A program made the translations under genes and the position numbers. From the NCBI GenBank assembly GCA_044892525.1, contig CM097885.1:247256001-247319852 (forward strand): 63,852 bases of DNA. Reading direction: 5' to 3'. A model generated the notes under the pieces. It had not been told where the DNA came from. It saw nothing but the letters and a program-made list of their open reading frames with translations, and did no database searches. Shown in pieces: positions 21,101 through 51,100 of this stretch; position 1 is the stretch's first letter, and the number at the start of each line of letters is the position of its first letter. This DNA is from Schmidtea polychroa (Eukaryota).

Positions 21101-24100
21101 ATTTGTTTATGAAATTGAATTTTAATTAATGATTTTTTGAAATAATAGATAAATATTATAATTTCATCACTTTAGAAAATATTTAGATAACTGAAACTTA
21201 CTCGTTTTCAAGAATTGTAATAGTGATTTCTAAATTGGTGATTTGAGAACCTGGATTTACTTTTGGCGAATTCAAGTAATCCAATAACTTTGCAGAGTCT
21301 GCTAGATCTGTGCCTAATATTACTACATTCGATGTATCGCCATTGTCGAATGTGACTGTGAATTCTGTAGTTAGAACCTTTGTAGTATTGTCTATTCCAA
21401 TATTGACCTCATTGATTGGTGGTGTCTGTGTTGCTGAAGATGAATTTTATTGAATTATTTGGTATTTTCAAGATAAGAAATAAATTTACCTTGTTTATTC
21501 AGATCTACTTGAATTTGAATTATTTGACCAGTAGTTGTTAAACCTTGGGCCGTTCCAAGTTTTTCATTTGATTCTATAGGTAACTGTTTATTATCGACAA
21601 TAACTGTGATGTCAGATGGTTGAATAATCTATTGAAAATGAGTAAAGTTAAATTTTGCATAAGATATTTTAATGTAAGTTACATTTTTGTCTTTCATTCC
21701 GTCTTGATTAAAACATTGTATAGGGACTGTTGTGGTCAGTGTTGTTGTTTCATTTAATGGTCGTGGTGTAGAAGGCCTTGTTGGTATCTTTTTTGTTGTT
21801 GTTGTTTCTGATGTCAAAATAATTTCAGTTACTTCTGTTATCATAGGTGTTTTTTCCTGTGTTGAAGTTCCTAGACAATTTAGAAATTTTGTTTGGTCCT
21901 TTAAAACTATATACTTTTACAACTTATTGGTTCGTCAAGGTTTGGATTTTTACAGTCCGCAATATTATCACAGTTTTTGGCACAGATCATATTTCCTGTA
22001 ATATCTTCACAAAATGTTTCTTCATTATTGCAAAATTGTGTTGTCAATAGGGTTTTTTCTATTGTTGTTGTCAATAATTCTGTATTCATGGTTGTAGCCG
22101 ATATTTTAGTTGCAAATGTCGTAGTTGTTGATAGTGAAGTTGTTACTTCTTTCGGAGTAAAGCAACCAATGACCTCTAAGCGAACAACTATTGTTGGATT
22201 GGAGTCATCGCTAAATGAGACAAGAGTTATAAATTTGTTTAGGAAATCAAATAATTTGATTGAAATTTTGAAACATTATATAAATTTTGAAAACTGTTAT
22301 TTAACTCAAACTTACGGGTTTCGAGTAGTTGTAATAGTAATTTCTATACTGTCGATTTTAGATCCTGGATTTACTTTTGGAGAATTCAAGTAATCCAATA
22401 ATTTTGGAGAGTCTTGTAGATCTTTGCCAGATTTTAATACTTTCGATATATCGCCATTTTCCAATTTGACTTTCAATTCTGCAACTAGAACCTTTGTAGC
22501 ATTGTCTACGAAAATATTGACCTCATTGATTGCTGCTGTCTGTGTTTCTAAAAATGAATTTTATTGAATAATTTAATATTTTCAAAATGAGATTTGAATT
22601 TACCATTTTTAGTCGGATTTACTTCAAAAACAACTACTGAACCAGTAATGGTTAAACCTTTGGTCGTTCCAAGTTGTTCATTTGACTCTGTAGGTAGTGG
22701 TTTATTATCGACAGTAATTGTGATGTCAGATGGTTGAATAGTCTAATATAAGTACGAGAAGTTAAAATCCACATGGAATATTAGAATTTAAGTTACATTT
22801 TTCTCTGTCATTCCGTCTTTAATTAAACATGGTATTGGAGTTGTTGTTGTTTGTGTTGGTGTTGTTGTAGCTGATGTTGTGGTTGCAGATGTCGTAGTTG
22901 TTGATAGTGAAGTTGTTACTTCTTTCGGAGTAAAGCAACCAATGACCTCTAAGCGAACAACTATTGTTGGATTGGAGTCATCGCTAAATGAGACAAGAGT
23001 TATAAATTTGTTTAGGAAATCAAATAATTTGATTGAAATTTTGAAACATTATATAAATTTTGAAAACTGTTATTTAACTCAAACTTACGGGTTTCGAGTA
23101 GTTGTAATAGTAATTTCTATACTGTCGATTTTAGATCCTGGATTTACTTTTGGAGAATTCAAGTAATCCAATAATTTTGGAGAGTCTTGTAGATCTTTGC
23201 CAGATTTTAATACTTTCGATATATCGCCATTTTCCAATTTGACTTTCAATTCTGCAACTAGAACCTTTGTAGCATTGTCTACGAAAATATTGACCTCATT
23301 GATTGCTGCTGTCTGTGTTTCTAAAAATGAATTTTATTGAATAATTTAATATTTTCAAAATGAGATTTGAATTTACCATTTTTAGTCGGATTTACTTCAA
23401 AAACAACTACTGAACCAGTAATGGTTAAACCTTTGGTCGTTCCAAGTTGTTCATTTGACTCTGTAGGTAGTGGTTTATTATCGACAGTAATTGTGATGTC
23501 AGATGGTTGAATAGTCTAATATAAGTACGAGAAGTTAAAATCCACATGGAATATTAGAATTTAAGTTACATTTTTCTCTGTCATTCCGTCTTTAATTAAA
23601 CATGGTATTGGAGTTGTTGTTGTTTGTGTTGGTGTTGTTGTAGCTGATGTTGTGGTTGCAGATGTCGTAGTTGTTGATAGTGAAGTTGTTACTTCTTTCG
23701 GAGTAAAGCAACCAATGACCTCTAAGCGAACAACTATTGTTGGATTGGAGTCATCGCTAAATGAGACAAGAGTTATAAATTTGTTTAGGAAATCAAATAA
23801 TTTGATTGAAATTTTGAAACATTATATAAATTTTGAAAACTGTTATTTAACTCAAACTTACGGGTTTCGAGTAGTTGTAATAGTAATTTCTATACTGTCG
23901 ATTTTAGATCCTGGATTTACTTTTGGAGAATTCAAGTAATCCAATAATTTTGGAGAGTCTTGTAGATCTTTGCCAGATTTTAATACTTTCGATATATCGC
24001 CATTTTCCAATTTGACTTTCAATTCTGCAACTAGAACCTTTGTAGCATTGTCTACGAAAATATTGACCTCATTGATTGCTGCTGTCTGTGTTTCTAAAAA

Positions 24101-27100
24101 TGAATTTTATTGAATAATTTAATATTTTCAAAATGAGATTTGAATTTACCATTTTTAGTCGGATTTACTTCAAAAACAACTACTGAACCAGTAATGGTTA
24201 AACCTTTGGTCGTTCCAAGTTGTTCATTTGACTCTGTAGGTAGTGGTTTATTATCGACAGTAATTGTGATGTCAGATGGTTGAATAGTCTAATATAAGTA
24301 CGAGAAGTTAAAATCCACATGGAATATTAGAATTTAAGTTACATTTTTCTCTGTCATTCCGTCTTTAATTAAACATGGTATTGGAGTTGTTGTTGTTTGT
24401 GTTGGTGTTGTTGTAGCTGATGTTGTGGTTGCAGATGTCGTAGTTGTTGATAGTGAAGTTGTTACTTCTTTCGGAGTAAAGCAACCAATGACCTCTAAGC
24501 GAACAACTATTGTTGGATTGGAGTCATCGCTAAATGAGACAAGAGTTATAAATTTGTTTAGGAAATCAAATAATTTGATTGAAATTTTGAAACATTATAT
24601 AAATTTTGAAAACTGTTATTTAACTCAAACTTACGGGTTTCGAGTAGTTGTAATAGTAATTTCTATACTGTCGATTTTAGATCCTGGATTTACTTTTGGA
24701 GAATTCAAGTAATCCAATAATTTTGGAGAGTCTTGTAGATCTTTGCCAGATTTTAATACTTTCGATATATCGCCATTTTCCAATTTGACTTTCAATTCTG
24801 CAACTAGAACCTTTGTAGCATTGTCTACGAAAATATTGACCTCATTGATTGCTGCTGTCTGTGTTTCTAAAAATGAATTTTATTGAATAATTTAATATTT
24901 TCAAAATGAGATTTGAATTTACCATTTTTAGTCGGATTTACTTCAAAAACAACTACTGAACCAGTAATGGTTAAACCTTTGGTCGTTCCAAGTTGTTCAT
25001 TTGACTCTGTAGGTAGTGGTTTATTATCGACAGTAATTGTGATGTCAGATGGTTGAATAGTCTAATATAAGTACGAGAAGTTAAAATCCACATGGAATAT
25101 TAGAATTTAAGTTACATTTTTCTCTGTCATTCCGTCTTTAATTAAACATGGTATTGGAGTTGTTGTTGTTGTCGGTGTTATCGTTGTTATTGTTTGTGTT
25201 GGTGTTGTTGTAGCTGATGTTGTGGTTGCAGATGTCGTAGTTGTTGATAGTGAAGTTGTTACTTCTTTCGGAGTAAAGCAACCAATGACCTCTAAGCGAA
25301 CAACTATTGTTGGATTGGAGTCATCGCTAAATGAGACAAGAGTTATAAATTTGTTTAGGAAATCAAATAATTTGATTGAAATTTTGAAACATTATATAAA
25401 TTTTGAAAACTGTTATTTAACTCAAACTTACGGGTTTCGAGTAGTTGTAATAGTAATTTCTATACTGTCGATTTTAGATCCTGGATTTACTTTTGGAGAA
25501 TTCAAGTAATCCAATAATTTTGGAGAGTCTTGTAGATCTTTGCCAGATTTTAATACTTTCGATATATCGCCATTTTCCAATTTGACTTTCAATTCTGCAA
25601 CTAGAACCTTTGTAGCATTGTCTACGAAAATATTGACCTCATTGATTGCTGCTGTCTGTGTTTCTAAAAATGAATTTTATTGAATAATTTAATATTTTCA
25701 AAATGAGATTTGAATTTACCATTTTTAGTCGGATTTACTTCAAAAACAACTACTGAACCAGTAATGGTTAAACCTTTGGTCGTTCCAAGTTGTTCATTTG
25801 ACTCTGTAGGTAGTGGTTTATTATCGACAGTAATTGTGATGTCAGATGGTTGAATAGTCTAATATAAGTACGAGAAGTTAAAATCCACATGGAATATTAG
25901 AATTTAAGTTACATTTTTCTCTGTCATTCCGTCTTTAATTAAACATGGTATTGGAGTTGTTGTTGTTTGTGTTGGTGTTGTTGTAGCTGATGTTGTGGTT
26001 GCAGATGTCGTAGTTGTTGATAGTGAAGTTGTTACTTCTTTCGGAGTAAAGCAACCAATGACCTCTAAGCGAACAACTATTGTTGGATTGGAGTCATCGC
26101 TAAATGAGACAAGAGTTATAAATTTGTTTAGGAAATCAAATAATTTGATTGAAATTTTGAAACATTATATAAATTTTGAAAACTGTTATTTAACTCAAAC
26201 TTACGGGTTTCGAGTAGTTGTAATAGTAATTTCTATACTGTCGATTTTAGATCCTGGATTTACTTTTGGAGAATTCAAGTAATCCAATAATTTTGGAGAG
26301 TCTTGTAGATCTTTGCCAGATTTTAATACTTTCGATATATCGCCATTTTCCAATTTGACTTTCAATTCTGCAACTAGAACCTTTGTAGCATTGTCTACGA
26401 AAATATTGACCTCATTGATTGCTGCTGTCTGTGTTTCTAAAAATGAATTTTATTGAATAATTTAATATTTTCTAAATGAGATTTGAATTTACCATTTTTA
26501 GTCGGATTTACTTCAAAAACAACTACTGAACCAGTAATGGTTAAACCTTTGGTCGTTCCAAGTTGTTCATTTGACTCTGTAGGTAGTGGTTTATTATCGA
26601 CAGTAATTGTGATGTCAGATGGTTGAATAGTCTAATATAAGTACGAGAAGTTAAAATCCACATGGAATATTAGAATTTAAGTTACATTTTTCTCTGTCAT
26701 TCCGTCTTTAATTAAACATGGTATTGGAGTTGTTGTTGTTGTCGGTGTTATCGTTGTTATTGTTTGTGTTGGTGTTGTTGTAGCTGATGTTGTGGTTGCA
26801 GATGTCGTAGTTGTTGATAGTGAAGTTGTTACTTCTTTCGGAATAAAGCAACCAATGACCTCTAAGCGAACAACTATTGTTGGATTGGAGTCATCGCTAA
26901 ATGAGACAAGAGTTATAAATTTGTTTAGGAAATCAAATAATTTGATTGAAATTTTGAAACATTATATAAATTTTGAAAACTGTTATTTAACTCAAACTTA
27001 CGGGTTTCGAGTAGTTGTAATAGTAATTTCTATACTGTCGATTTTAGATCCTGGATTTACTTTTGGAGAATTCAAGTAATCCAATAATTTTGGAGAGTCT

Positions 27101-30100
27101 TGTAGATCTTTGCCAGATTTTAATACTTTCGATATATCGCCATTTTCCAATTTGACTTTCAATTCTGCAACTAGAACCTTTGTAGCATTGTCTACGAAAA
27201 TATTGACCTCATTGATTGCTGCTGTCTGTGTTTCTAAAAATGAATTTTATTGAATAATTTAATATTTTCAAAATGAGATTTGAATTTACCATTTTTAGTC
27301 GGATTTACTTCAAAAACAACTACTGAACCAGTAATGGTTAAACCTTTGGTCGTTCCAAGTTGTTCATTTGACTCTGTAGGTAGTGGTTTATTATCGACAG
27401 TAATTGTGATGTCAGATGGTTGAATAGTCTAATATAAGTACGAGAAGTTAAAATCCACATGGAATATTAGAATTTAAGTTACATTTTTCTCTGTCATTCC
27501 GTCTTTAATTAAACATGGTATTGGAGTTGTTGTTGTTTGTGTTGGTGTTGTTGTAGCTGATGTTGTGGTTGCAGATGTCGTAGTTGTTGATAGTGAAGTT
27601 GTTACTTCTTTCGGAGTAAAGCAACCAATGACCTCTAAGCGAACAACTATTGTTGGATTGGAGTCATCGCTAAATGAGACAAGAGTTATAAATTTGTTTA
27701 GGAAATCAAATAATTTGATTGAAATTTTGAAACATTATATAAATTTTGAAAACTGTTATGTAACTCAAACTTACGGGTTTCGAGTAGTTGTAATAGTAAT
27801 TTCTATACTGTCGATTTTAGATCCTGGATTTACTTTTGGAGAATTCAAGTAATCCAATAATTTTGGAGAGTCTTGTAGATCTTTGCCAGATTTTAATACT
27901 TTCGATATATCGCCATTTTCCAATTTGACTTTCAATTCTGCAACTAGAACCTTTGTAGCATTGTCTACGAAAATATTGACCTCATTGATTGCTGCTGTCT
28001 GTGTTTCTAAAAATGAATTTTATTGAATAATTTAATATTTTCAAAATGAGATTTGAATTTACCATTTTTAGTCGGATTTACTTCAAAAACAACTACTGAA
28101 CCAGTAATGGTTAAACCTTTGGTCGTTCCAAGTTGTTCATTTGACTCTGTAGGTAGTGGTTTATTATCGACAGTAATTGTGATGTCAGATGGTTGAATAG
28201 TCTAATATAAGTACGAGAAGTTAAAATCCACATGGAATATTAGAATTTAAGTTACATTTTTCTCTGTCATTCCGTCTTTAATTAAACATGGTATTGGAGT
28301 TGTTGTTGTTGTCGGTGTTATCGTTGTTATTGTTTGTGTTGGTGTTGTTGTAGCTGATGTTGTGGTTGCAGATGTCGTAGTTGTTGATAGTGAAGTTGTT
28401 ACTTCTTTCGAAGTAAAGCAACCAATGACCTCTAAGCGAACAACTATTGTTGGATTGGAGTCATCGCTAAATGAGACAAGAGTTATAAATTTGTTTAGGA
28501 AATCAAATAATTTGATTGAAATTTTGAAACATTATATAAATTTTGAAAACTGTTATTTAACTCAAACTTACGGGTTTCGAGTAGTTGTAATAGTAATTTC
28601 TATACTGTCGATTTTAGATCCTGGATTTACTTTTGGAGAATTCAAGTAATCCAATAATTTTGGAGAGTCTTGTAGATCTTTGCCAGATTTTAATACTTTC
28701 GATATATCGCCATTTTCCAATTTGACTTTCAATTCTGCAACTAGAACCTTTGTAGCATTGTCTACGAAAATATTGACCTCATTGATTGCTGCTGTCTGTG
28801 TTTCTAAAAATGAATTTTATTGAATAATTTAATATTTTCAAAATGAGATTTGAATTTACCATTTTTAGTCGGATTTACTTCAAAAACAAATACTGATCCA
28901 GTAATGGTTAAACCTTTGGTCGTTCCAAGTTGTTCATTTGACTCTGTAGGTAGTGGTTTATTATCGACAGTAATTGTGATGTCAGATGGTTGAATAGTCT
29001 AATATAAGTACGAGAAGTTAAAATCCACATGGAATATTAGAATTTAAGTTACATTTTTCTCTGTCATTCCGTCTTTAATTAAACATGGTATTGGAGTTGT
29101 TGTTGTTTGTGTTGGTGTTGTTGTAGCTGATGTTGTGGTTGCAGATGTCGTAGTTGTTGATAGTGAAGTTGTTACTTCTTTCGGAGTAAAGCAACCAATG
29201 ACCTCTAAGCGAACAACTATTGTTGGATTGGAGTCATCGCTAAATGAGACAAGAGTTATAAATTTGTTTAGGAAATCAAATAATTTGATTGAAATTTTGA
29301 AACATTATATAAATTTTGAAAACTGTTATTTAACTCAAACTTACGGGTTTCGAGTAGTTGTAATAGTAATTTCTATACTGTCGATTTTAGATCCTGGATT
29401 TACTTTTGGAGAATTCAAGTAATCCAATAATTTTGGAGAGTCTTGTAGATCTTTGCCAGATTTTAATACTTTCGATATATCGCCATTTTCCAATTTGACT
29501 TTCAATTCTGCAACTAGAACCTTTGTAGCATTGTCTACGAAAATATTGACCTCATTGATTGCTGCTGTCTGTGTTTCTAAAAATGAATTTTATTGAATAA
29601 TTTAATATTTTCAAAATGAGATTTGAATTTACCATTTTTAGTCGGATTTACTTCAAAAACAACTACTGATCCAGTAATGGTTAAACCTTTGGTCGTTCCA
29701 AGTTGTTCATTTGACTCTGTAGGTAGTGGTTTATTATCGACAGTAATTGTGATGTCAGATGGTTGAATAGTCTAATATAAGTACGAGAAGTTAAAATCCA
29801 CATGGAATATTAGAATTTAAGTTACATTTTTCTCTGTCATTCCGTCTTTAATTAAACATGGTATTGGAGTTGTTGTTGTTGTCGGTGTTATCGTTGTTAT
29901 TGTTTGTGTTGGTGTTGTTGTAGCTGATGTTGTGGTTGCAGATGTCGTAGTTGTTGATAGTGAAGTTGTTACTTCTTTCGGAGTAAAGCAACCAATGACC
30001 TCTAAGCGAACAACTATTGTTGGATTGGAGTCATCGCTAAATGAGACAAGAGTTATAAATTTGTTTAGGAAATCAAATAATTTGATTGAAATTTTGAAAC

Positions 30101-33100
30101 ATTATATAAATTTTGAAAACTGTTATTTAACTCAAACTTACGGGTTTCGAGTAGTTGTAATAGTAATTTCTATACTGTCGATTTTAGATCCTGGATTTAC
30201 TTTTGGAGAATTCAAGTAATCCAATAATTTTGGAGAGTCTTGTAGATCTTTGCCAGATTTTAATACTTTCGATATATCGCCATTTTCCAATTTGACTTTC
30301 AATTCTGCAACTAGAACCTTTGTAGCATTGTCTACGAAAATATTGACCTCATTGATTGCTGCTGTCTGTGTTTCTAAAAATGAATTTTATTGAATAATTT
30401 AATATTTTCAAAATGAGATTTGAATTTACCATTTTTAGTCGGATTTACTTCAAAAACAACTACTGAACCAGTAATGGTTAAACCTTTGGTCGTTCCAAGT
30501 TGTTCATTTGACTCTGTAGGTAGTGGTTTATTATCGACAGTAATTGTGATGTCAGATGGTTGAATAGTCTAATATAAGTACGAGAAGTTAAAATCCACAT
30601 GGAATATTAGAATTTAAGTTACATTTTTCTCTGTCATTCCGTCTTTAATTAAACATGGTATTGGAGTTGTTGTTGTTGTCGGTGTTATCGTTGTTATTGT
30701 TTGTGTTGGTGTTGTTGTAGCTGATGTTGTGGTTGCAGATGTCGTAGTTGTTGATAGTGAAGTTGTTACTTCTTTCGGAGTAAAGCAACCAATGACCTCT
30801 AAGCGAACAACTATTGTTGGATTGGAGTCATCGCTAAATGAGACAAGAGTTATAAATTTGTTTAGGAAATCAAATAATTTGATTGAAATTTTGAAACATT
30901 ATATAAATTTTGAAAACTGTTATTTAACTCAAACTTACGGGTTTCGAGTAGTTGTAATAGTAATTTCTATACTGTCGATTTTAGATCCTGGATTTACTTT
31001 TGGAGAATTCAAGTAATCCAATAATTTTGGAGAGTCTTGTAGATCTTTGCCAGATTTTAATACTTTCGATATATCGCCATTTTCCAATTTGACTTTCAAT
31101 TCTGCAACTAGAACCTTTGTAGCATTGTCTACGAAAATATTGACCTCATTGATTGCTGCTGTCTGTGTTTCTAAAAATGAATTTTATTGAATAATTTAAT
31201 ATTTTCAAAATGAGATTTGAATTTACCATTTTTAGTCGGATTTACTTCAAAAACAACTACTGATCCAGTAATGGTTAAACCTTTGGTCGTTCCAAGTTGT
31301 TCATTTGACTCTGTAGGTAGTGGTTTATTATCGACAGTAATTGTGATGTCAGATGGTTGAATAGTCTAATATAAGTACGAGAAGTTAAAATCCACATGGA
31401 ATATTAGAATTTAAGTTACATTTTTCTCTGTCATTCCGTCTTTAATTAAACATGGTATTGGAGTTGTTGTTGTTGTCGGTGTTATCGTTGTTATTGTTTG
31501 TGTTGGTGTTGTTGTAGCTGATGTTGTGGTTGCAGATGTCGTAGTTGTTGATAGTGAAGTTGTTACTTCTTTCGGAGTAAAGCAACCAATGACCTCTAAG
31601 CGAACAACTATTGTTGGATTGGAGTCATCGCTAAATGAGACAAGAGTTATAAATTTGTTTAGGAAATCAAATAATTTGATTGAAATTTTGAAACATTATA
31701 TAAATTTTGAAAACTGTTATTTAACTCAAACTTACGGGTTTCGAGTAGTTGTAATAGTAATTTCTATACTGTCGATTTTAGATCCTGGATTTACTTTTGG
31801 AGAATTCAAGTAATCCAATAATTTTGGAGAGTCTTGTAGATCTTTGCCAGATTTTAATACTTTCGATATATCGCCATTTTCCAATTTGACTTTCAATTCT
31901 GCAACTAGAACCTTTGTAGCATTGTCTACGAAAATATTGACCTCATTGATTGCTGCTGTCTGTGTTTCTAAAAATGAATTTTATTGAATAATTTAATATT
32001 TTCAAAATGAGATTTGAATTTACCATTTTTAGTCGGATTTACTTCAAAAACAACTACTGAACCAGTAATGGTTAAACCTTTGGTCGTTCCAAGTTGTTCA
32101 TTTGACTCTGTAGGTAGTGGTTTATTATCGACAGTAATTGTGATGTCAGATGGTTGAATAGTCTAATATAAGTACGAGAAGTTAAAATCCACATGGAATA
32201 TTAGAATTTAAGTTACATTTTTCTCTGTCATTCCGTCTTTAATTAAACATGGTATTGGAGTTGTTGTTGTTGTCGGTGTTATCGTTGTTATTGTTTGTGT
32301 TGGTGTTGTTGTAGCTGATGTTGTGGTTGCAGATGTCGTAGTTGTTGATAGTGAAGTTGTTACTTCTTTCGGAGTAAAGCAACCAATGACCTCTAAGCGA
32401 ACAACTATTGTTGGATTGGAGTCATCGCTAAATGAGACAAGAGTTATAAATTTGTTTAGGAAATCAAATAATTTGATTGAAATTTTGAAACATTATATAA
32501 ATTTTGAAAACTGTTATTTAACTCAAACTTACGGGTTTCGAGTAGTTGTAATAGTAATTTCTATACTGTCGATTTTAGATCCTGGATTTACTTTTGGAGA
32601 ATTCAAGTAATCCAATAATTTTGGAGAGTCTTGTAGATCTTTGCCAGATTTTAATACTTTCGATATATCGCCATTTTCCAATTTGACTTTCAATTCTGCA
32701 ACTAGAACCTTTGTAGCATTGTCTACGAAAATATTGACCTCATTGATTGCTGCTGTCTGTGTTTCTAAAAATGAATTTTATTGAATAATTTAATATTTTC
32801 AAAATGAGATTTGAATTTACCATTTTTAGTCGGATTTACTTCAAAAACAACTACTGATCCAGTAATGGTTAAACCTTTGGTCGTTCCAAGTTGTTCATTT
32901 GACTCTGTAGGTAGTGGTTTATTATCGACAGTAATTGTGATGTCAGATGGTTGAATAGTCTAATATAAGTACGAGAAGTTAAAATCCACATGGAATATTT
33001 GAATTTAAGTTACATTTTTCTCTGTCATTCCGTCTTTAATTAAACATGGTATTGGAGTTGTTGTTGTTTGTGTTGGTGTTGTTGTAGCTGATGTTGTGGT

Positions 33101-39100: not shown

Positions 39101-42100
39101 AAACAACTACTGAACCAGTAATGGTTAAACCTTTGGTCGTTCCAAGTTGTTCATTTGACTCTGTAGGTAGTGGTTTATTATCGACAGTAATTGTGATGTC
39201 AGATGGTTGAATAGTCTAATATAAGTACGAGAAGTTAAAATCCACATGGAATATTAGAATTTAAGTTACATTTTTCTCTGTCATTCCGTCTTTAATTAAA
39301 CATGGTATTGGAGTTGTTGTTGTTTGTGTTGGTGTTGTTGTAGCTGATGTTGTGGTTGCAGATGTCGTAGTTGTTGATAGTGAAGTTGTTACTTCTTTCG
39401 GAGTAAAGCAACCAATGACCTCTAAGCGAACAACTATTGTTGGATTGGAGTCATCGCTAAATGAGACAAGAGTTATAAATTTGTTTAGGAAATCAAATAA
39501 TTTGATTGAAATTTTGAAACATTATATAAATTCTGAAAACTGTTATTTAACTCAAACTTACGGGTTTCGAGTAGTTGTAATAGTAATTTCTATACTGTCG
39601 ATTTTAGATCCTGGATTTACTTTTGGAGAATTCAAGTAATCCAATAATTTTGGAGAGTCTTGTAGATCTTTGCCAGATTTTAATACTTTCGATATATCGC
39701 CATTTTCCAATTTGACTTTCAATTCTGCAACTAGAACCTTTGTAGCATTGTCTACGAAAATATTGACCTCATTGATTGCTGCTGTCTGTGTTTCTAAAAA
39801 TGAATTTTATTGAATAATTTAATATTTTCAAAATGAGATTTGAATTTACCATTTTTAGTCGGATTTACTTCAAAAACAACTACTGATCCAGTAATGGTTA
39901 AACCTTTGGTCGTTCCAAGTTGTTCATTTGACTCTGTAGGTAGTGGTTTATTATCGACAGTAATTGTGATGTCAGATGGTTGAATAGTCTAATATAAGTA
40001 CGAGAAGTTAAAATCCACATGGAATATTAGAATTTAAGTTACATTTTTCTCTGTCATTCCGTCTTTAATTAAACATGGTATTGGAGTTGTTGTTTGTGTT
40101 GGTGTTGTTGTAGCTGATGTTGTGGTTGCAGATGTCGTAGTTGTTGATAGTGAAGTTGTTACTTCTTTCGGAGTAAAGCAACCAATGACCTCTAAGCGAA
40201 CAACTATTGTTGGATTGGAGTCATCGCTAAATGAGACAAGAGTTATAAATTTGTTTAGGAAATCAAATAATTTGATTGAAATTTTGAAACATTATATAAA
40301 TTCTGAAAACTGTTATTTAACTCAAACTTACGGGTTTCGAGTAGTTGTAATAGTAATTTCTATACTGTCGATTTTAGATCCTGGATTTACTTTTGGAGAA
40401 TTCAAGTAATCCAATAATTTTGGAGAGTCTTGTAGATCTTTGCCAGATTTTAATACTTTCGATATATCGCCATTTTCCAATTTGACTTTCAATTCTGCAA
40501 CTAGAACCTTTGTAGCATTGTCTACGAAAATATTGACCTCATTGATTGCTGCTGTCTGTGTTTCTAAAAATGAATTTTATTGAATAATTTAATATTTTCA
40601 AAATGAGATTTGAATTTACCATTTTTAGTCGGATTTACTTCAAAAACAACTACTGATCCAGTAATGGTTAAACCTTTGGTCGTTCCAAGTTGTTCATTTG
40701 ACTCTGTAGGTAGTGGTTTATTATCGACAGTAATTGTGATGTCAGATGGTTGAATAGTCTAATATAAGTACGAGAAGTTAAAATCCACATGGAATATTAG
40801 AATTTAAGTTACATTTTTCTCTGTCATTCCGTCTTTAATTAAACATGGTATTGGAGTTGTTGTTGTTTGTGTTGGTGTTGTTGTAGCTGATGTTGTGGTT
40901 GCAGATGTCGTAGTTGTTGATAGTGAAGTTGTTACTTCTTTCGGAGTAAAGCAACCAATGACCTCTAAGCGAACAACTATTGTTGGATTGGAGTCATCGC
41001 TAAATGAGACAAGAGTTATAAATTTGTTTAGGAAATCAAATAATTTGATTGAAATTTTGAAACATTATATAAATTTTGAAAACTGTTATTTAACTCAAAC
41101 TTACGGGTTTCGAGTAGTTGTAATAGTAATTTCTATACTGTCGATTTTAGATCCTGGATTTACTTTTGGAGAATTCAAGTAATCCAATAATTTTGGAGAG
41201 TCTTGTAGATCTTTGCCAGATTTTAATACTTTCGATATATCGCCATTTTCCAATTTGACTTTCAATTCTGCAACTAGAACCTTTGTAGCATTGTCTACGA
41301 AAATATTGACCTCATTGATTGCTGCTGTCTGTGTTTCTAAAAATGAATTTTATTGAATAATTTAATATTTTCAAAATGAGATTTGAATTTACCATTTTTA
41401 GTCGGATTTACTTCAAAAACAACTACTGAACCAGTAATGGTTAAACCTTTGGTCGTTCCAAGTTGTTCATTTGACTCTGTAGGTAGTGGTTTATTATCGA
41501 CAGTAATTGTGATGTCAGATGGTTGAATAGTCTAATATAAGTACGAGAAGTTAAAATCCACATGGAATATTAGAATTTAAGTTACATTTTTCTCTGTCAT
41601 TCCGTCTTTAATTAAACATGGTATTGGAGTTGTTGTTGTTGTCGGTGTTATCGTTGTTATTGTTTGTGTTGGTGTTGTTGTAGCTGATGTTGTGGTTGCA
41701 GATGTCGTAGTTGTTGATAGTGAAGTTGTTACTTCTTTCGGAGTAAAGCAACCAATGACCTCTAAGCGAACAACTATTGTTGGATTGGAGTCATCGCTAA
41801 ATGAGACAAGAGTTATAAATTTGTTTAGGAAATCAAATAATTTGATTGAAATTTTGAAACATTAAATAAATTTTGAAAACTGTAATTTAACTCAAACTTA
41901 CGGGTTTCGAGTAGTTGTAATAGTAATTTCTATACTGTCGATTTTAGATCCTGGATTTACTTTTGGAGAATTCAAGTAATCCAATAATTTTGGAGAGTCT
42001 TGTAGATCTTTGCCAGATTTTAATACTTTCGATATATCGCCATTTTCCAATTTGACTTTCAATTCTGCAACTAGAACCTTTGTAGCATTGTCTACGAAAA

Positions 42101-45100
42101 TATTGACCTCATTGATTGCTGCTGTCTGTGTTTCTAAAAATGAATTTTATTGAATAATTTAATATTTTCAAAATGAGATTTGAATTTACCATTTTTAGTC
42201 GGATTTACTTCAAAAACAACTACTGAACCAGTAATGGTTAAACCTTTGGTCGTTCCAAGTTGTTCATTTGACTCTGTAGGTAGTGGTTTATTATCGACAG
42301 TAATTGTGATGTCAGATGGTTGAATAGTCTAATATAAGTACGAGAAGTTAAAATCCACATGGAATATTAGAATTTAAGTTACATTTTTCTCTGTCATTCC
42401 GTCTTTAATTAAACATGGTATTGGAGTTGTTGTTGTTGTCGGTGTTATCGTTGTTATTGTTTGTGTTGGTGTTGTTGTAGCTGATGTTGTGGTTGCAGAT
42501 GTCGTAGTTGTTGATAGTGAAGTTGTTACTTCTTTCGGAGTAAAGCAACCAATGACCTCTAAGCGAACAACTATTGTTGGATTGGAGTCATCGCTAAATG
42601 AGACAAGAGTTATAAATTTGTTTAGGAAATCAAATAATTTGATTGAAATTTTGAAACATTAAATAAATTTTGAAAACTGTAATTTAACTCAAACTTACGG
42701 GTTTCGAGTAGTTGTAATAGTAATTTCTATACTGTCGATTTTAGATCCTGGATTTACTTTTGGAGAATTCAAGTAATCCAATAATTTTGGAGAGTCTTGT
42801 AGATCTTTGCCAGATTTTAATACTTTCGATATATCGCCATTTTCCAATTTGACTTTCAATTCTGCAACTAGAACCTTTGTAGCATTGTCTACGAAAATAT
42901 TGACCTCATTGATTGCTGCTGTCTGTGTTTCTAAAAATGAATTTTATTGAATAATTTAATATTTTCAAAATGAGATTTGAATTTACCATTTTTAGTCGGA
43001 TTTACTTCAAAAACAACTACTGAACCAGTAATGGTTAAACCTTTGGTCGTTCCAAGTTGTTCATTTGACTCTGTAGGTAGTGGTTTATTATCGACAGTAA
43101 TTGTGATGTCAGATGGTTGAATAGTCTAATATAAGTACGAGAAGTTAAAATCCACATGGAATATTAGAATTTAAGTTACATTTTTCTCTATCATTCCGTC
43201 TTTAATTAAACATGGTATTGGAGTTGTTGTTGTTTGTGTTGGTGTTGTTGTAGCTGATGTTGTGGTTGCAGATGTCGTAGTTGTTGATAGTGAAGTTGTT
43301 ACTTCTTTCGGAGTAAAGCAACCAATGACCTCTAAGCGAACAACTATTGTTGGATTGGAGTCATCGCTAAATGAGACAAGAGTTATAAATTTGTTTAGGA
43401 AATCAAATAATTTGATTGAAATTTTGAAACATTATATAAATTCTGAAAACTGTTATTTAACTCAAACTTACGGGTTTCGAGTAGTTGTAATAGTAATTTC
43501 TATACTGTCGATTTTAGATCCTGGATTTACTTTTGGAGAATTCAAGTAATCCAATAATTTTGGAGAGTCTTGTAGATCTTTGCCAGATTTTAATACTTTC
43601 GATATATCGCCATTTTCCAATTTGACTTTCAATTCTGCAACTAGAACCTTTGTAGCATTGTCTACGAAAATATTGACCTCATTGATTGCTGCTGTCTGTG
43701 TTTCTAAAAATGAATTTTATTGAATAATTTAATATTTTCAAAATGAGATTTGAATTTACCATTTTTAGTCGGATTTACTTCAAAAACAACTACTGAACCA
43801 GTAATGGTTAAACCTTTGGTCGTTCCAAGTTGTTCATTTGACTCTGTAGGTAGTGGTTTATTATCGACAGTAATTGTGATGTCAGATGGTTGAATAGTCT
43901 AATATAAGTACGAGAAGTTAAAATCCACATGGAATATTAGAATTTAAGTTACATTTTTCTCTGTCATTCCGTCTTTAATTAAACATGGTATTGGAGTTGT
44001 TGTTGTTTGTGTTGGTGTTGTTGTAGCTGATGTTGTGGTTGCAGATGTCGTAGTTGTTGATAGTGAAGTTGTTACTTCTTTCGGAGTAAAGCAACCAATG
44101 ACCTCTAAGCGAACAACTATTGTTGGATTGGAGTCATCGCTAAATGAGACAAGAGTTATAAATTTGTTTAGGAAATCAAATAATTTGATTGAAATTTTGA
44201 AACATTATATAAATTCTGAAAACTGTTATTTAACTCAAACTTACGGGTTTCGAGTAGTTGTAATAGTAATTTCTATACTGTCGATTTTAGATCCTGGATT
44301 TACTTTTGGAGAATTCAAGTAATCCAATAATTTTGGAGAGTCTTGTAGATCTTTGCCAGATTTTAATACTTTCGATATATCGCCATTTTCCAATTTGACT
44401 TTCAATTCTGCAACTAGAACCTTTGTAGCATTGTCTACGAAAATATTGACCTCATTGATTGCTGCTGTCTGTGTTTCTAAAAATGAATTTTATTGAATAA
44501 TTTAATATTTTCAAAATGAGATTTGAATTTACCATTTTTAGTCGGATTTACTTCAAAAACAACTACTGATCCAGTAATGGTTAAACCTTTGGTCGTTCCA
44601 AGTTGTTCATTTGACTCTGTAGGTAGTGGTTTATTATCGACAGTAATTGTGATGTCAGATGGTTGAATAGTCTAATATAAGTACGAGAAGTTAAAATCCA
44701 CATGGAATATTAGAATTTAAGTTACATTTTTCTCTGTCATTCCGTCTTTAATTAAACATGGTATTGGAGTTGTTGTTTGTGTTGGTGTTGTTGTAGCTGA
44801 TGTTGTGGTTGCAGATGTCGTAGTTGTTGATAGTGAAGTTGTTACTTCTTTCGGAGTAAAGCAACCAATGACCTCTAAGCGAACAACTATTGTTGGATTG
44901 GAGTCATCGCTAAATGAGACAAGAGTTATAAATTTGTTTAGGAAATCAAATAATTTGATTGAAATTTTGAAACATTATATAAATTCTGAAAACTGTTATT
45001 TAACTCAAACTTACGGGTTTCGAGTAGTTGTAATAGTAATTTCTATACTGTCGATTTTAGATCCTGGATTTACTTTTGGAGAATTCAAGTAATCCAATAA

Positions 45101-48100
45101 TTTTGGAGAGTCTTGTAGATCTTTGCCAGATTTTAATACTTTCGATATATCGCCATTTTCCAATTTGACTTTCAATTCTGCAACTAGAACCTTTGTAGCA
45201 TTGTCTACGAAAATATTGACCTCATTGATTGCTGCTGTCTGTGTTTCTAAAAATGAATTTTATTGAATAATTTAATATTTTCAAAATGAGATTTGAATTT
45301 ACCATTTTTAGTCGGATTTACTTCAAAAACAACTACTGATCCAGTAATGGTTAAACCTTTGGTCGTTCCAAGTTGTTCATTTGACTCTGTAGGTAGTGGT
45401 TTATTATCGACAGTAATTGTGATGTCAGATGGTTGAATAGTCTAATATAAGTACGAGAAGTTAAAATCCACATGGAATATTAGAATTTAAGTTACATTTT
45501 TCTCTGTCATTCCGTCTTTAATTAAACATGGTATTGGAGTTGTTGTTGTTTGTGTTGGTGTTGTTGTAGCTGATGTTGTGGTTGCAGATGTCGTAGTTGT
45601 TGATAGTGAAGTTGTTACTTCTTTCGGAGTAAAGCAACCAATGACCTCTAAGCGAACAACTATTGTTGGATTGGAGTCATCGCTAAATGAGACAAGAGTT
45701 ATAAATTTGTTTAGGAAATCAAATAATTTGATTGAAATTTTGAAACATTATATAAATTTTGAAAACTGTTATTTAACTCAAACTTACGGGTTTCGAGTAG
45801 TTGTAATAGTAATTTCTATACTGTCGATTTTAGATCCTGGATTTACTTTTGGAGAATTCAAGTAATCCAATAATTTTGGAGAGTCTTGTAGATCTTTGCC
45901 AGATTTTAATACTTTCGATATATCGCCATTTTCCAATTTGACTTTCAATTCTGCAACTAGAACCTTTGTAGCATTGTCTACGAAAATATTGACCTCATTG
46001 ATTGCTGCTGTCTGTGTTTCTAAAAATGAATTTTATTGAATAATTTAATATTTTCAAAATGAGATTTGAATTTACCATTTTTAGTCGGATTTACTTCAAA
46101 AACAACTACTGAACCAGTAATGGTTAAACCTTTGGTCGTTCCAAGTTGTTCATTTGACTCTGTAGGTAGTGGTTTATTATCGACAGTAATTGTGATGTCA
46201 GATGGTTGAATAGTCTAATATAAGTACGAGAAGTTAAAATCCACATGGAATATTAGAATTTAAGTTACATTTTTCTCTGTCATTCCGTCTTTAATTAAAC
46301 ATGGTATTGGAGTTGTTGTTGTTGTCGGTGTTATCGTTGTTATTGTTTGTGTTGGTGTTGTTGTAGCTGATGTTGTGGTTGCAGATGTCGTAGTTGTTGA
46401 TAGTGAAGTTGTTACTTCTTTCGGAGTAAAGCAACCAATGACCTCTAAGCGAACAACTATTGTTGGATTGGAGTCATCGCTAAATGAGACAAGAGTTATA
46501 AATTTGTTTAGGAAATCAAATAATTTGATTGAAATTTTGAAACATTAAATAAATTTTGAAAACTGTAATTTAACTCAAACTTACGGGTTTCGAGTAGTTG
46601 TAATAGTAATTTCTATACTGTCGATTTTAGATCCTGGATTTACTTTTGGAGAATTCAAGTAATCCAATAATTTTGGAGAGTCTTGTAGATCTTTGCCAGA
46701 TTTTAATACTTTCGATATATCGCCATTTTCCAATTTGACTTTCAATTCTGCAACTAGAACCTTTGTAGCATTGTCTACGAAAATATTGACCTCATTGATT
46801 GCTGCTGTCTGTGTTTCTAAAAATGAATTTTATTGAATAATTTAATATTTTCAAAATGAGATTTGAATTTACCATTTTTAGTCGGATTTACTTCAAAAAC
46901 AACTACTGAACCAGTAATGGTTAAACCTTTGGTCGTTCCAAGTTGTTCATTTGACTCTGTAGGTAGTGGTTTATTATCGACAGTAATTGTGATGTCAGAT
47001 GGTTGAATAGTCTAATATAAGTACGAGAAGTTAAAATCCACATGGAATATTAGAATTTAAGTTACATTTTTCTCTGTCATTCCGTCTTTAATTAAACATG
47101 GTATTGGAGTTGTTGTTGTTGTCGGTGTTATCGTTGTTATTGTTTGTGTTGGTGTTGTTGTAGCTGATGTTGTGGTTGCAGATGTCGTAGTTGTTGATAG
47201 TGAAGTTGTTACTTCTTTCGGAGTAAAGCAACCAATGACCTCTAAGCGAACAACTATTGTTGGATTGGAGTCATCGCTAAATGAGACAAGAGTTATAAAT
47301 TTGTTTAGGAAATCAAATAATTTGATTGAAATTTTGAAACATTAAATAAATTTTGAAAACTGTAATTTAACTCAAACTTACGGGTTTCGAGTAGTTGTAA
47401 TAGTAATTTCTATACTGTCGATTTTAGATCCTGGATTTACTTTTGGAGAATTCAAGTAATCCAATAATTTTGGAGAGTCTTGTAGATCTTTGCCAGATTT
47501 TAATACTTTCGATATATCGCCATTTTCCAATTTGACTTTCAATTCTGCAACTAGAACCTTTGTAGCATTGTCTACGAAAATATTGACCTCATTGATTGCT
47601 GCTGTCTGTGTTTCTAAAAATGAATTTTATTGAATAATTTAATATTTTCAAAATGAGATTTGAATTTACCATTTTTAGTCGGATTTACTTCAAAAACAAC
47701 TACTGAACCAGTAATGGTTAAACCTTTGGTCGTTCCAAGTTGTTCATTTGACTCTGTAGGTAGTGGTTTATTATCGACAGTAATTGTGATGTCAGATGGT
47801 TGAATAGTCTAATATAAGTACGAGAAGTTAAAATCCACATGGAATATTAGAATTTAAGTTACATTTTTCTCTATCATTCCGTCTTTAATTAAACATGGTA
47901 TTGGAGTTGTTGTTGTTTGTGTTGGTGTTGTTGTAGCTGATGTTGTGGTTGCAGATGTCGTAGTTGTTGATAGTGAAGTTGTTACTTCTTTCGGAGTAAA
48001 GCAACCAATGACCTCTAAGCGAACAACTATTGTTGGATTGGAGTCATCGCTAAATGAGACAAGAGTTATAAATTTGTTTAGGAAATCAAATAATTTGATT

Positions 48101-51100
48101 GAAATTTTGAAACATTATATAAATTCTGAAAACTGTTATTTAACTCAAACTTACGGGTTTCGAGTAGTTGTAATAGTAATTTCTATACTGTCGATTTTAG
48201 ATCCTGGATTTACTTTTGGAGAATTCAAGTAATCCAATAATTTTGGAGAGTCTTGTAGATCTTTGCCAGATTTTAATACTTTCGATATATCGCCATTTTC
48301 CAATTTGACTTTCAATTCTGCAACTAGAACCTTTGTAGCATTGTCTACGAAAATATTGACCTCATTGATTGCTGCTGTCTGTGTTTCTAAAAATGAATTT
48401 TATTGAATAATTTAATATTTTCAAAATGAGATTTGAATTTACCATTTTTAGTCGGATTTACTTCAAAAACAACTACTGAACCAGTAATGGTTAAACCTTT
48501 GGTCGTTCCAAGTTGTTCATTTGACTCTGTAGGTAGTGGTTTATTATCGACAGTAATTGTGATGTCAGATGGTTGAATAGTCTAATATAAGTACGAGAAG
48601 TTAAAATCCACATGGAATATTAGAATTTAAGTTACATTTTTCTCTGTCATTCCGTCTTTAATTAAACATGGTATTGGAGTTGTTGTTGTTTGTGTTGGTG
48701 TTGTTGTAGCTGATGTTGTGGTTGCAGATGTCGTAGTTGTTGATAGTGAAGTTGTTACTTCTTTCGGAGTAAAGCAACCAATGACCTCTAAGCGAACAAC
48801 TATTGTTGGATTGGAGTCATCGCTAAATGAGACAAGAGTTATAAATTTGTTTAGGAAATCAAATAATTTGATTGAAATTTTGAAACATTATATAAATTTT
48901 GAAAACTGTTATTTAACTCAAACTTACGGGTTTCGAGTAGTTGTAATAGTAATTTCTATACTGTCGATTTTAGATCCTGGATTTACTTTTGGAGAATTCA
49001 AGTAATCCAATAATTTTGGAGAGTCTTGTAGATCTTTGCCAGATTTTAATACTTTCGATATATCGCCATTTTCCAATTTGACTTTCAATTCTGCAACTAG
49101 AACCTTTGTAGCATTGTCTACGAAAATATTGACCTCATTGATTGCTGCTGTCTGTGTTTCTAAAAATGAATTTTATTGAATAATTTAATATTTTCAAAAT
49201 GAGATTTGAATTTACCATTTTTAGTCGGATTTACTTCAAAAACAACTACTGAACCAGTAATGGTTAAACCTTTGGTCGTTCCAAGTTGTTCATTTGACTC
49301 TGTAGGTAGTGGTTTATTATCGACAGTAATTGTGATGTCAGATGGTTGAATAGTCTAATATAAGTACGAGAAGTTAAAATCCACATGGAATATTAGAATT
49401 TAAGTTACATTTTTCTCTGTCATTCCGTCTTTAATTAAACATGGTATTGGAGTTGTTGTTGTTGTTGTCGGTGTTATCGTTGTTATTGTTTGTGTTGGTG
49501 TTGTTGCTTCTGATGTTGTGGAAGCAGCTGTTGTTATAGTTGTTGATCGCGAAATTGTAAATTGACTCGTTTCTATTGTTTTTATTGGTGTAGTGGTTTC
49601 ATTAGTTGTTATTGATATTGTACTTGTAAATATTTCGCAATTCTTTTCATCAAAGGCGTTCACACAGTCGTTTACTCCGTTACATTGTTTTGTTCCGGTA
49701 ATGCATTGGCAGATTCTTTCAGTCGTCGTCGTTTTGTCATTTTCACATAATATCATCTCAGGTTCTTTGCATAAACATTCTATATTTTCCATTTATATAT
49801 TTTTTAACAATAATAACAAAATTTACCGCATCCGTGTTCGTCACTTCCGTCTCCGCAATCATCTTGTCCGTCACATTTGTTTGTTAATGTTATACAATTT
49901 TGGCTATTATTACATTTGAATTCTGTTATCTCGCATTCTGAATTTTCTATTATTTATTTTTTTAATATTAGCTATTTACTTTTGCAGTTTTCCTCGTCTG
50001 ATTTGTCGTTTACCCCGCAGTCATATATTCCATTGCATTTTTTGTTTTCTTCTATACAAATATTTGAATCTTTACACATACTTTGGTGTGGTAAGCATCC
50101 TAAATGTATAAATTTCTGTAAATTTTAATTTTCTATATTTTTTTCCATATTTATATAAAGTTTTTGAATTGTGTTATGTAGAAAAAGTCTTCTCTTTTTT
50201 TTGGTAAAAATTGAATTGTTATTAAAAGTCGCTCTTAAAAATCAGGGTTTTTTGATTTGATGAATCTTTTTATTCCGGTGAAATTCAGTTCTGATTTCGT
50301 AAATTAAGATATTGTTGCAATAATCAGGATAATTCAGTGTAGTGCCCCTGTCTAGCACTTTTATTAATTTAATCATTGAACTAAAAATATATTGGATTAA
50401 TTAAATTAAAATTAAAAACAATTGTTTAAATAATCTTTTAATTTCACTTTTTACATAAATCATTATAAAATTCAATTAAAAAAAATCATCAAATTCAAAC
50501 ATGTCTAACAAAGTAACTGAAGTTGTCACTGAAGTCAAACAAGTTGAAGAAGTTGATCATCAAATCGATTCAAAATCAATGGATCAAATATGGCAGAAAT
50601 ACAGAAAACAGAAACCTTCATCGTATTCACAATGATATCTCTAGTGATATTCAAGTTCTTCGACAATGTTAATAACAATAAATTATTTGTTCAAGTTAAT
50701 TGTATGTCTCTACATTCAGGATATTCCATTGCTCATAAATCATTGGACTGTTTAAATTTCAAGTTATTATTTTTACCTAAAAACCAACTTCACATATTCA
50801 ACTTTATGATATGGGCATATTAAAAACTTTCAAAACTTATTATGTAAATGCACTCATAAATTATTTTCTTAATGATTGTGAATCATCGAATTTTCTTGAA
50901 AAATTTAATATACGCCAAGCTATTGTTATAATTTCAGAACTTAGGAAATGTTAAGGGTTGAAACTATCAGAATTAATGAATATTGTAAATCATACCTTGC
51001 TGACATTAGAAAGGATAAAGTTGAAGAAAATATCAATGAAGTAATAGAAGAAACACTTGAAAATCTTGATGGGATTTAAAACATTCAATTTTACAATGAT

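Follow-up and report, generated by a model that had tools for sequence, protein, structure and literature searches.

A 27-kb tandem array of three-exon cassettes in Schmidtea polychroa is the repeat core of one giant gene, probably for a secreted mucin- or glue-type glycoprotein

The surface-contacting glue of the flatworms Macrostomum, Minona and Theama is the protein ap2: Mlig-ap2 of Macrostomum lignano (14,794 aa), Tmed-ap2 of Theama mediterranea (7,228 aa) and Mile-ap2 of Minona ileanae (PMC6410801, PMC8621496, PMC9229212). ap2 proteins have vWD, C8, TIL and LDL domains at the N terminus, two central tandem-repeat regions (21 repeats of 255 aa and 25 of 221 aa, or 8 of 330 aa and 12 of 230 aa), and three TSP-1 domains and one TIL at the C terminus. 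They are O-glycosylated, and the giant, repeat-cored genes that encode them could neither be assembled from short reads nor recovered from transcriptomes (PMC6410801, PMC8621496, PMC9229212). ap2 is further characterized by expression in adhesive gland cells, O-glycans that react with PNA, and a non-adhesive RNAi phenotype. The papers on flatworm glue that we consulted cover macrostomids, a proseriate and a polyclad; we found no triclad ap2 in them, and adhesive proteins of planarians (Tricladida) are absent from them. In the planarian S. mediterranea, three VWD-C8-TIL genes (muc-like-1 to -3) were defined solely by fragments of their N-terminal transcripts; their expression is in gland cells around the pharynx (peripharyngeal) rather than in the adhesive glands (PMC7117911).

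We found that a 27-kb region of the S. polychroa genome that resembles a satellite is genuine: it is transcribed, its introns are spliced out correctly, and it is the repeat core of one giant gene. The array lies in the stretch of 63,852 nucleotides that we analyzed (the window) and is one part of a minus-strand gene of at least 77 kb (Table 1). The gene is of a known kind, encoding a giant secreted mucin- or glue-type glycoprotein, and is built on a module that has no detectable relatives. Taking all of the evidence together, the array is probably the first repeat core of a giant secreted glycoprotein gene that is the triclad counterpart of ap2 or a close relative that functions in mucus.

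Table 1. Features of the gene in the window (positions are those of the window; the representative unit is 22743-23515).
Feature	Position	Strand	Evidence
N-terminal exon region with VWD and C8	54412..62221	-	Pfam
VWD exons	61976-62221, 59003-59476, 54691-54945	-	Pfam
C8 exons	59838-60032, 54412-54654	-	Pfam
Five exons (49827-49937, 49980-50098, 51636-51750, 53917-54080, 54137-54383) with TIL and four LDLa	49827..54383	-	RNA joints, Pfam
Further matches of the N-terminal set (VWD/C8/TIL/LDLa)	54097-54405, 53873-54139, 49403-49792		Pfam
Exon upstream of array: partial LDLa, Thr-rich linker, start of first 151-aa module	49409..49779	-	RNA joints (49354>49409 and 49779>49827), Pfam Ldl_recept_a, open frame
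Array: 35 tandem three-exon cassettes (773/797/770 bp)	22116..49506	-	Anchor count, frame, RNA-contig splicing
Exon B, representative unit, 139 nt, phase 0 to 1	23377..23515	-	
Intron, 56 nt, GT..AG, representative unit	23321..23376	-	Sequence and RNA joints
Exon C, representative unit, 232 nt, phase 1 to 2	23089..23320	-	
Intron, 105 nt, GT..AG, representative unit	22984..23088	-	Sequence and RNA joints
Exon A, representative unit, 187 nt (211/184 in others), phase 2 to 0	22797..22983	-	
Intron, 54 nt, GT..AG, phase 0, unit-to-unit	22743..22796	-	Sequence and RNA joints
Exon A of last unit, continuing into Cys-rich module	21915..22209	-	Frame (inferred)
Diverged module copy D' (exon C 64% identical)	21078..21715	-	Sequence comparison
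Second repeat region: four arrays of the 177-bp repeat (59-aa Ser/Thr), continuing beyond the window start	1279..20991	-	
Four D'' module copies, exon C (45% identical), separating 177-bp arrays	13014-13241, 7946-8173, 2877-3104, 637-864	-	

Upstream of the array, the exons when spliced contain an open frame with TIL and four to five LDLa domains, and one RNA contig of 1,482 nt links the first linker exon with the LDLa and TIL exons. We looked for a signal-peptide or start exon in the N-terminal region and did not find one. On the other side of the array, the second repeat region comprises seven arrays of the 59-aa repeat overall, with open reading frames of 584 and 767 aa, and six of the arrays are followed by a 151-aa module. 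The C-terminal part of the gene, downstream (L035 and L033), contains four TSP1 and two TIL domains by Pfam. Its Cys-rich exons at L033:5434-6016(-) look knot-like by eye; searched exon by exon with Pfam, they gave no cystine-knot match. No EMI domain was seen among the Pfam matches upstream and downstream.

On present evidence, a lubricating or feeding mucin and an ap2-type glue are equally possible, because the muc-like genes of S. mediterranea are expressed in the peripharyngeal and not the adhesive glands. That the gene is an orthologue of the muc-like genes, encoding a gel-forming mucin for lubrication or feeding, or of SCO-spondin, and is not an ap2 adhesive at all, seems to us a possible but doubtful explanation; the modules would then be spacers or glycan binders. 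Gel-forming mucins are distinguished by three VWD with C8 and TIL together with Pro/Thr/Ser-rich (PTS) regions, and the gene shares with the family of MUC2, MUC5AC and von Willebrand factor the three or more N-terminal VWD, the C8, the TIL and the PTS center. The Cys-rich C-terminal exons look like a cystine knot by eye, although Pfam gave no match, and end-to-end disulfide polymerization would be expected. However, the planarian gene contains LDLa and TSP1, which are excluded by the definition of the muc-like set (PMC7117911); TSP1 is an exclusion criterion there, and the gene has four. It also differs from gel-forming mucins in that its PTS regions are broken by 42 globular modules and its main repeat is a multi-exon cassette, not one giant exon. 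The similarity to SCO-spondin lies in the VWD, C8, TIL, LDLa cluster, TSP1 and terminal Cys-rich exons. SCO-spondin has some two dozen TSP1 domains alternating with TIL, an EMI domain and one F5/8 type C domain, and is not known to carry PTS arrays. In contrast, we found only four TSP1, saw no EMI, and found huge Thr/Ser repeats and 42 modules of an unrecognized type. The order of the parts argues for ap2: the succession described for ap2, with N-terminal vWD and LDL, two repeat regions, and then three TSP-1 with TIL, is matched point by point.

We counted 35 units in the array as exact occurrences of a 30-mer anchor (22116 to 48728 in the window), spaced by 773 bp (18 times), 797 bp (14 times) or 770 bp (twice). 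The initial annotation, made from sequence alone, had described introns of 54, 56 and 105 nt with GT..AG ends in every unit, and a script confirmed that 105 of 105 array introns start with GT and end with AG. In the first unit, an RNA joint (49159>49216) falls at the same boundary as exon B in the representative unit. The description of each cassette as entering and leaving in phase 0 was correct for the whole unit; the single introns instead differ in phase (0, 1 and 2), and the frame would be lost if any one exon were skipped. Each unit contributes 558, 582 or 555 coding nt, all of them divisible by three. Exon A spans the boundary between two modules, encoding the last part of the first, the Thr linker and the first part of the second, and the only length differences, +24 nt and -3 nt, are inside this exon, as had been noted. 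They had been taken as a sign of selection for frame. Our analysis did not establish this: in-frame indels do not demonstrate such selection because triplet slippage is expected anyway in a codon-periodic Thr tract, and the difference in diversity between introns and exons gave p = 0.066. The spliced array encodes 35 modules of 151 aa, each running from Cys to Cys, which are connected through Thr-rich linkers of 35-43 aa (185-194 aa per unit). The total of 6,620 aa agrees with the beads-on-a-string protein of ~6,600 aa that had been predicted; when the adjoining linker and Cys-rich exons are included, the reading extends to 6,779 aa free of stops, of which 20% are Thr.

The 34 full units are almost identical. 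Their mean pairwise difference is 0.24%, compared to ~20% for the introns of the adjoining diverged copy, and an exact six-unit block of 4,683 bp is present twice inside the array; both are consistent with the recent or homogenized expansion proposed in the initial annotation. There are 14 variable sites among these units (7 intronic, 2 synonymous and 5 missense) and no stops or frameshifts, again as had been described. The synonymous variants are GAC/GAT and GGT/GGA (23:11). Each missense variant is in only one or two units, variants that are common fall at synonymous or intronic sites, and exon C has no substitutions across the 34 units. Nucleotide diversity (pi) was 0.0047 in introns and 0.0015 in exons, an excess that is only suggestive (Fisher p = 0.066; 14 variable sites).

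These patterns also bear on the possibility, which we consider improbable, that the array is a transcribed but young and nearly neutral VNTR in a mucin, with a module that has little function itself. Such a VNTR would fit the weak contrast between coding and intron sequences inside the array, and it would fit the comparison of the main unit with D', in which dN (0.199) is similar to intron divergence (~0.20) and greater than dS (0.142), giving a dN/dS of 1.47 that is not significant. On the other hand, comparison of the main unit with D'' yields a dN/dS of 0.30, and the rarity of the missense variants and the constancy of exon C also argue against neutrality. In addition, the 42 copies of the module, all at this one locus (35 main, one D' and six in the second repeat region), are all exactly 151 aa, have kept both Cys and have introns at the same places. 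The D' introns (54, 56 and 123 nt) match those of the main unit in phase as well, and a 14-residue motif is fully conserved between the main module and D'.

The module had no relatives in 1.84 billion proteins, the PDB or Pfam. A profile of exon C, compared to 1.84 billion representative proteins, gave only three spurious matches to repeat proteins. The module is possibly similar to discoidin, a likeness in its end motifs only. The first and last Cys bound 151 aa. At its start the module has C-x4-G-M ... I-x4-I-T, and its end resembles that of a genuine discoidin exon elsewhere in this genome, I-S-V-R-F-E-L-F-G-C; these terminal motifs can be read as a PROSITE-like F5/8 type C signature. The sequence also looks beta-rich, like discoidin. 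F5/8 type C (discoidin) domains are found in coagulation factors V and VIII and in the adhesive proteins nectin (sea urchin) and Sfp1 (sea star). Unlike discoidin, the module has no Trp at all, and its introns are in different positions from those of the true discoidin gene of this genome. The Pfam model PF00754 did not match single module exons at E up to 10, and in a six-frame scan of the genome (E up to 1) it had 63 matches, 0 of them in this locus. With hhalign, the probability of a match between module and discoidin was below 1%. Tentatively, the module could represent an undescribed, lineage-restricted family, perhaps a Trp-less offshoot of discoidin, that acts as the multivalent surface or glycan binder of the first triclad ap2 counterpart, with a strain-variable copy number that tunes adhesion or mucus.

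Contigs of public sequencing runs, three RNA-like (X7, X9 and X10, from three studies) and one DNA-like (X1), were used to analyze splicing and copy number. The RNA-like contigs lack precisely the 105, 56 and 54 nt of the introns, whose ends read CT..AC on the plus strand, and bear all three splice joints as well as the joint from unit to unit. Each short intron is thus removed individually, and the units are coding cassettes and not satellite, as had been claimed. Spliced transcripts, whose absence had been named beforehand as evidence against that claim, were present in all three RNA-like runs. None of the array splice joints were in contigs of the DNA-like run X1. Contigs of 612 nt from the RNA-like runs correspond to a collapsed, circular unit. 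Skipping of a whole unit would create the same junction of exon A to exon B and is indistinguishable in short-read contigs, because the units are identical.

Depth was the other test set in advance, and it favored the array over far fewer copies. In X1, contig depth was 8,244-9,225 for the unit and 264-381 in six contigs of the single-copy flank, which makes the unit ~27-33 times as deep. Depths in RNA contigs were 634 for the unit versus 13 for the flank, and 370 versus 7-8; the ratios of unit to flank were ~48 (X7), 47-53 (X9) and 15-27 (X10). The depth of assembled contigs is a crude measure, and ~30 in X1 versus ~48 in X7 and X9 is no proof of a difference in copy number. Gross over-expansion by the assembler is unlikely. 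Indeed, an artefact in which a short array was expanded or a block duplicated, making the 35 copies and 6,600 aa unreal, has very little probability in our estimation: units that are 99.76% alike, the exact six-unit block and evidence drawn from contigs of the runs, each shorter than the 27 kb, would be compatible with it, but the DNA and RNA depth ratios and the 16 distinct unit sequences in non-periodic order, which are anchors for long accurate reads, argue against it.

If the array is the first repeat core of a giant secreted glycoprotein, then the product would be secreted, disulfide-polymerizing and heavily O-glycosylated, with a length of at least about 15,000 aa. It would begin with VWD-C8-TIL assemblies and the LDLa cluster, followed by the 35 modules with Thr-rich linkers, the Cys-rich module, one diverged module, and the 59-aa Ser/Thr blocks and their modules (seven arrays, six modules), and would close with four TSP1, two TIL and Cys-rich exons. 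The near-identity of the units and the six-unit duplication suggest that in-register unequal crossing-over adds or removes whole modules and homogenizes both exons and introns. Such gain or loss leaves the frame intact because the coding length of the unit is a multiple of three. Based on what is known of these domains, many identical beta-rich modules, possibly discoidin-like, could provide multivalent binding along a filament, glycosylated linkers could hold that filament in an extended, hydrated state, and molecules could be crosslinked into a network through the VWD end and the Cys-rich C-terminal end.

As a candidate, the locus is complete: its repeat core is resolved, and the genome is assembled to chromosome scale. 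The longest annotated transcript for the schPol2 assembly is 32.1 kb (PMC11410931). The array alone contributes about 20 kb of coding sequence and the 59-aa repeats seen contribute a similar amount; the longest annotated transcript is shorter than this coding sequence, and the annotation misses the gene. The array would also be masked as satellite, further hiding the gene. The array cleanly exemplifies a multi-exon cassette repeat, in which 105 almost identical short introns are still spliced correctly. The structure and ligand of the module should be easy to test and would be new ground, because the module has no detectable relative.

Compared by published architecture only, the planarian gene is like ap2 in its N-terminal vWD, C8, TIL and LDLa, its two successive repeat regions (in ap2, units of about 200-330 aa repeated 8-25 times) and its C-terminal TSP1 and TIL, and its Thr/Ser-rich regions would be predicted to permit O-glycosylation as in ap2. 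It also differs from ap2. The 35 planarian units of the first region, 186-194 aa each, are split into three exons, whereas for Minona one exon of 15 kb or longer was reported, and the second region alternates a domain with the 59-aa Ser/Thr repeats. As a repeat, the array is similar to the kringle IV-2 repeat of human LPA, a two-exon cassette VNTR with near-identical introns that changes in copy number by unequal recombination. The planarian tandem units likewise hold exons and introns, are in frame as whole units and have homogenized introns. They differ from kringle IV-2 in having three exons per 0.77 kb and introns of just 54-105 nt.

We found that the cassette array has the layout that had been proposed for it. 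A 30-mer at 22116 occurs exactly 35 times, the last at 48728, with spacings of 773 bp (18 times), 797 bp (14 times), and 770 bp (twice). The array is absent from the Tandem Repeats Finder list because the maximum period there is 500. The coding strand of the array is the minus strand, and all 105 of its introns start with GT and end with AG. Intron phases in the unit are 1, 2, and 0, and each unit has 558, 582, or 555 coding nucleotides; that is, it is frame-neutral only as a whole and not as any single exon. When spliced together, all of the unit exons plus the flanking linker exon and the terminal Cys-rich exon gave 6,779 codons with no stops. The other two frames of the same spliced sequence had 403 and 569 stops. 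The claim in the initial annotation, 35 tandem, in-frame, three-exon cassettes, was correct in each detail checked, and its main inference stands.

We placed contigs of three RNA-like runs (X7, X9, and X10, from three studies) and one DNA-like public run (X1) on window positions 48700-54500. In all three RNA-like runs, there were joints that skip exactly the 105-, 56-, and 54-nt introns of the unit. Read on the plus strand, the skipped stretches have CT..AC ends, corresponding to GT..AG on the minus strand. None of these joints was found in the DNA-like run. In addition, two of the RNA-like runs contained a circular contig of 612 nt ("goes back 800"), which is the collapsed spliced unit; in it, exon A of a unit is spliced to exon B of the following one. 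Further RNA joints, across introns of 47, 42, 1,537, 2,166, 56, and 54 nt, and one contig of 1,482 nt link the array to upstream exons. In these exons, a single open frame runs through a TIL domain, four to five LDLa modules, and a Thr-rich linker into the first module.

Contig depth, a crude measure, was 9,225 and 8,244 for two unit contigs in the DNA-like run compared to 264-381 for six single-copy flank contigs, a ratio of ~27-33. By the same crude measure, unit and flank contigs in the RNA-like runs had depths of 634 vs 13.3, 370 vs 7-7.9, and 163-187 vs 6.9-11.2. Far fewer copies and a lack of spliced transcripts had been named as results that would speak against the array. The ~27-33-fold depth, crude as it is, and the exact unit joints in each RNA-like run both favor it.

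The first linker exon, at the edge of the array, varied among runs. There, the X7 contig had 22 differences and a 3-nt gap relative to the assembly, and the X9 and X10 contigs had 3-5 differences. The X7 contig was identical to the assembly in the repeat unit and in the TIL and LDLa exons. The mismatches in the linker exon point to a divergent allele or strain at the array edge.

We compared the 34 complete units to each other and found 14 substitution sites and two indels, with a mean pairwise difference of 0.24%. Both indels fall within the Thr tract of exon A; 14 units carry the +24-nt indel and two the -3-nt one. Of the substitution sites, seven fall in introns (215 nt) and seven in exons (582 nt); pi was 0.0047 in introns vs 0.0015 in exons (p = 0.066 for the site counts). 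Two exonic sites are synonymous (GAC/GAT and GGT/GGA, at 23:11) and five are missense, each limited to one or two units. Exon C is invariant. The units fall into 16 distinct sequences, and a block of six units (4,683 bp) is repeated exactly in their order. This pattern is the trace expected of in-register unequal crossing-over. It fits the recent or continuously homogenized expansion that had been proposed; the other part of that proposal, selection for frame, is not proven by so few differences. Indels in multiples of three say little about frame selection because a codon-periodic Thr tract slips by triplets anyway.

Features of the locus and of PF00754 genes elsewhere (window positions unless stated)
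Feature	Position	Strand	Detail
Cassette array	22116-49506	-	35 units; in gene direction: exon B 139 nt, intron 56, exon C 232, intron 105, exon A 187/211/184, intron 54
Exon B, unit example	23377-23515	-	contains G-S-V-V-V
Introns skipped in RNA	48823-48927; 49160-49215; 49355-49408	-	105, 56, and 54 nt
D' module	21078-21715	-	one diverged copy
177-bp arrays	1279-20991		5.4, 21.4, 21.4, and 41.5 copies
177-bp arrays before window start	L035 (DNA before window start) 5035-10000		8.4 and at least 12.4 copies
Stretch of the first linker exon	49427-49779	-	mismatches to RNA contigs
High-copy stretches	~50250-50830; ~52580-53160		in 1.5-kb and 2.2-kb introns
N runs	56160-56356; 60449-60579		in VWD-region introns
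146-aa open frame	60720-61160	-	in VWD-region intron
PF00754 single-exon gene clusters	C3:121628682-121838682; C2:125.58-125.76 Mb; C2:177.8-178.9 Mb; C4:91.7-92.0 Mb		other places in the assembly; F-type-lectin-like pattern

The gene extends over 77 kb or more of contig C1, with 42 module copies in total. Upstream of the array in the gene direction, Pfam searches of minus-strand exons up to 62221 found three VWD pieces, two C8, one TIL, and LDLa. Searches of 62150-63852 and of the 10 kb beyond it gave no signal-peptide exon. Downstream, the last unit is followed by a Cys-rich module and then by D', whose exon C is 64% identical to that of the main unit and whose introns (54, 56, and 123 nt) are at the same places. 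After D' come arrays of the 177-bp repeat, which Tandem Repeats Finder does list; its copies match at 96-97% and encode 59-aa Ser/Thr repeats. Every 177-bp array but the first is preceded, in the gene direction, by a copy of the third module type, D'' (exon C 45% identical); four of these copies are inside the window and two lie before its start. The two 21.4-copy arrays have the same length, and their starts are 5,069 bp apart, indicating that the domain-plus-array super-unit was itself duplicated. Past this region, exons encode four TSP1 and two TIL domains. Two Cys-rich exons, on which Pfam made no call, resemble a cystine knot. The longest annotated transcript for schPol2 of Schmidtea polychroa is 32.1 kb (PMC11410931). 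The coding sequence here is longer, so the annotation probably does not cover the entire gene.

Several introns upstream of the array have features of their own. In the VWD region, there are two runs of N and an open frame of 146 aa that has the look of the C-terminal dimerization part of a hAT transposase. Two stretches in the 1.5-kb and 2.2-kb introns had a DNA-like contig depth of at least 10^5 vs ~300 in the flank. These are very high-copy repeats, some of which are present in RNA-like runs too.

The distance from first to last Cys of the module is exactly 151 residues in the main unit, D', and D'', with no indels among the types. dN/dS between the main unit and D'' was 0.30. Between the main unit and D', pN was 0.199, pS was 0.142, and intron divergence was ~20%. 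That is, these two have diverged fast, in a near neutral or adaptive manner, with length, Cys residues, and several motifs retained.

By sequence, the module is an orphan. Exon C had no match elsewhere in the 781-Mb genome, by sequence or by profile, at E up to 10. Pfam searches with the three exons singly gave only low-complexity noise. The exon C profile had three matches among 1.84 billion representative proteins, all unrelated repeat proteins with scores summed from short stretches. In 5.8 billion clusters (restricted length range), exon C found no homologous protein and the open frame of the last unit found no candidate spliced unit protein. Exon A and the exon C profile had only chance matches among PDB sequences, and exon C gave no lead in the ESM Atlas (best score 0.81 or less).

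The chances that the module is a discoidin (F5/8 type C) domain without tryptophan seem to us about even. The length and bounding Cys pair are discoidin-like, as is the start, C-x4-G-M and then I-x4-I-T. The ten residues at its end are very close to I-S-V-R-F-E-L-F-G-C, the end of a true PF00754 exon from the same genome. The second half presumably follows the factor VIII C2 consensus. In contrast, the intron positions of the module are unlike those of the true discoidin gene. Over the whole genome, PF00754 matched true discoidin and F-type-lectin-like genes elsewhere and nothing at this locus. A spliced alignment of the three module types, compared by hhalign to thin discoidin sets, had a probability of <1%, not above that of a reversed control, and the exon C profile vs the true discoidin C-terminal exon gave 0.1%. 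The homologue search with the true discoidin exon, done to build a comparison set, had one match only. A SEA domain, suggested by G-S-V-V-V in exon B of main units (the SEA autoproteolysis motif in membrane mucins), was rejected: diverged copies read GQIIQ and GSKIL, the position does not fit, and Pfam had no SEA match, so the motif is probably there by chance.

The PF00754 genes elsewhere include a tandem set on C3 with ~7.2 kb spacing. Identical scores at several places on C2 and C4 suggest recent inter-chromosome duplication or an assembly duplicate.

The locus is a giant gene for a predicted secreted glycoprotein of the ap2 or mucin type, with a repeat core in which the repeat is a multi-exon cassette. 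ap2 is the surface-contacting glue protein in the temporary adhesion of flatworms. It has vWD, C8, TIL, and LDL domains at the N-terminus, a core built from two stretches of tandem repeats (21 units of 255 aa followed by 25 of 221 aa in Macrostomum lignano, and 8 of 330 aa followed by 12 of 230 aa in Theama), and three TSP-1 and one TIL at the C-terminus; it is O-glycosylated, and peanut lectin binds it (PMC6410801, PMC8621496, PMC9229212). As judged from these published descriptions, the order of parts in the present gene is the same. ap2 genes could be resolved only with long-read genomes, and the ap2 papers include no triclad (PMC6410801, PMC8621496, PMC9229212). The kind of gene is known; the novelty lies in the module, the resolved array, and the status of this gene as a candidate for the first triclad ap2-like gene.

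By analogy, a role in mucus rather than glue is possible. Planarian "muc-like" genes, whose definition requires C8 and TIL along with three VWD domains, have their expression in gland cells around the pharynx (peripharyngeal; PMC7117911). The TSP1 repeats would exclude the present gene from the "muc-like" set as defined there. SCO-spondin has the same kinds of domain in different numbers, and the kringle IV-2 repeat of LPA is a multi-exon cassette like that of the present array.
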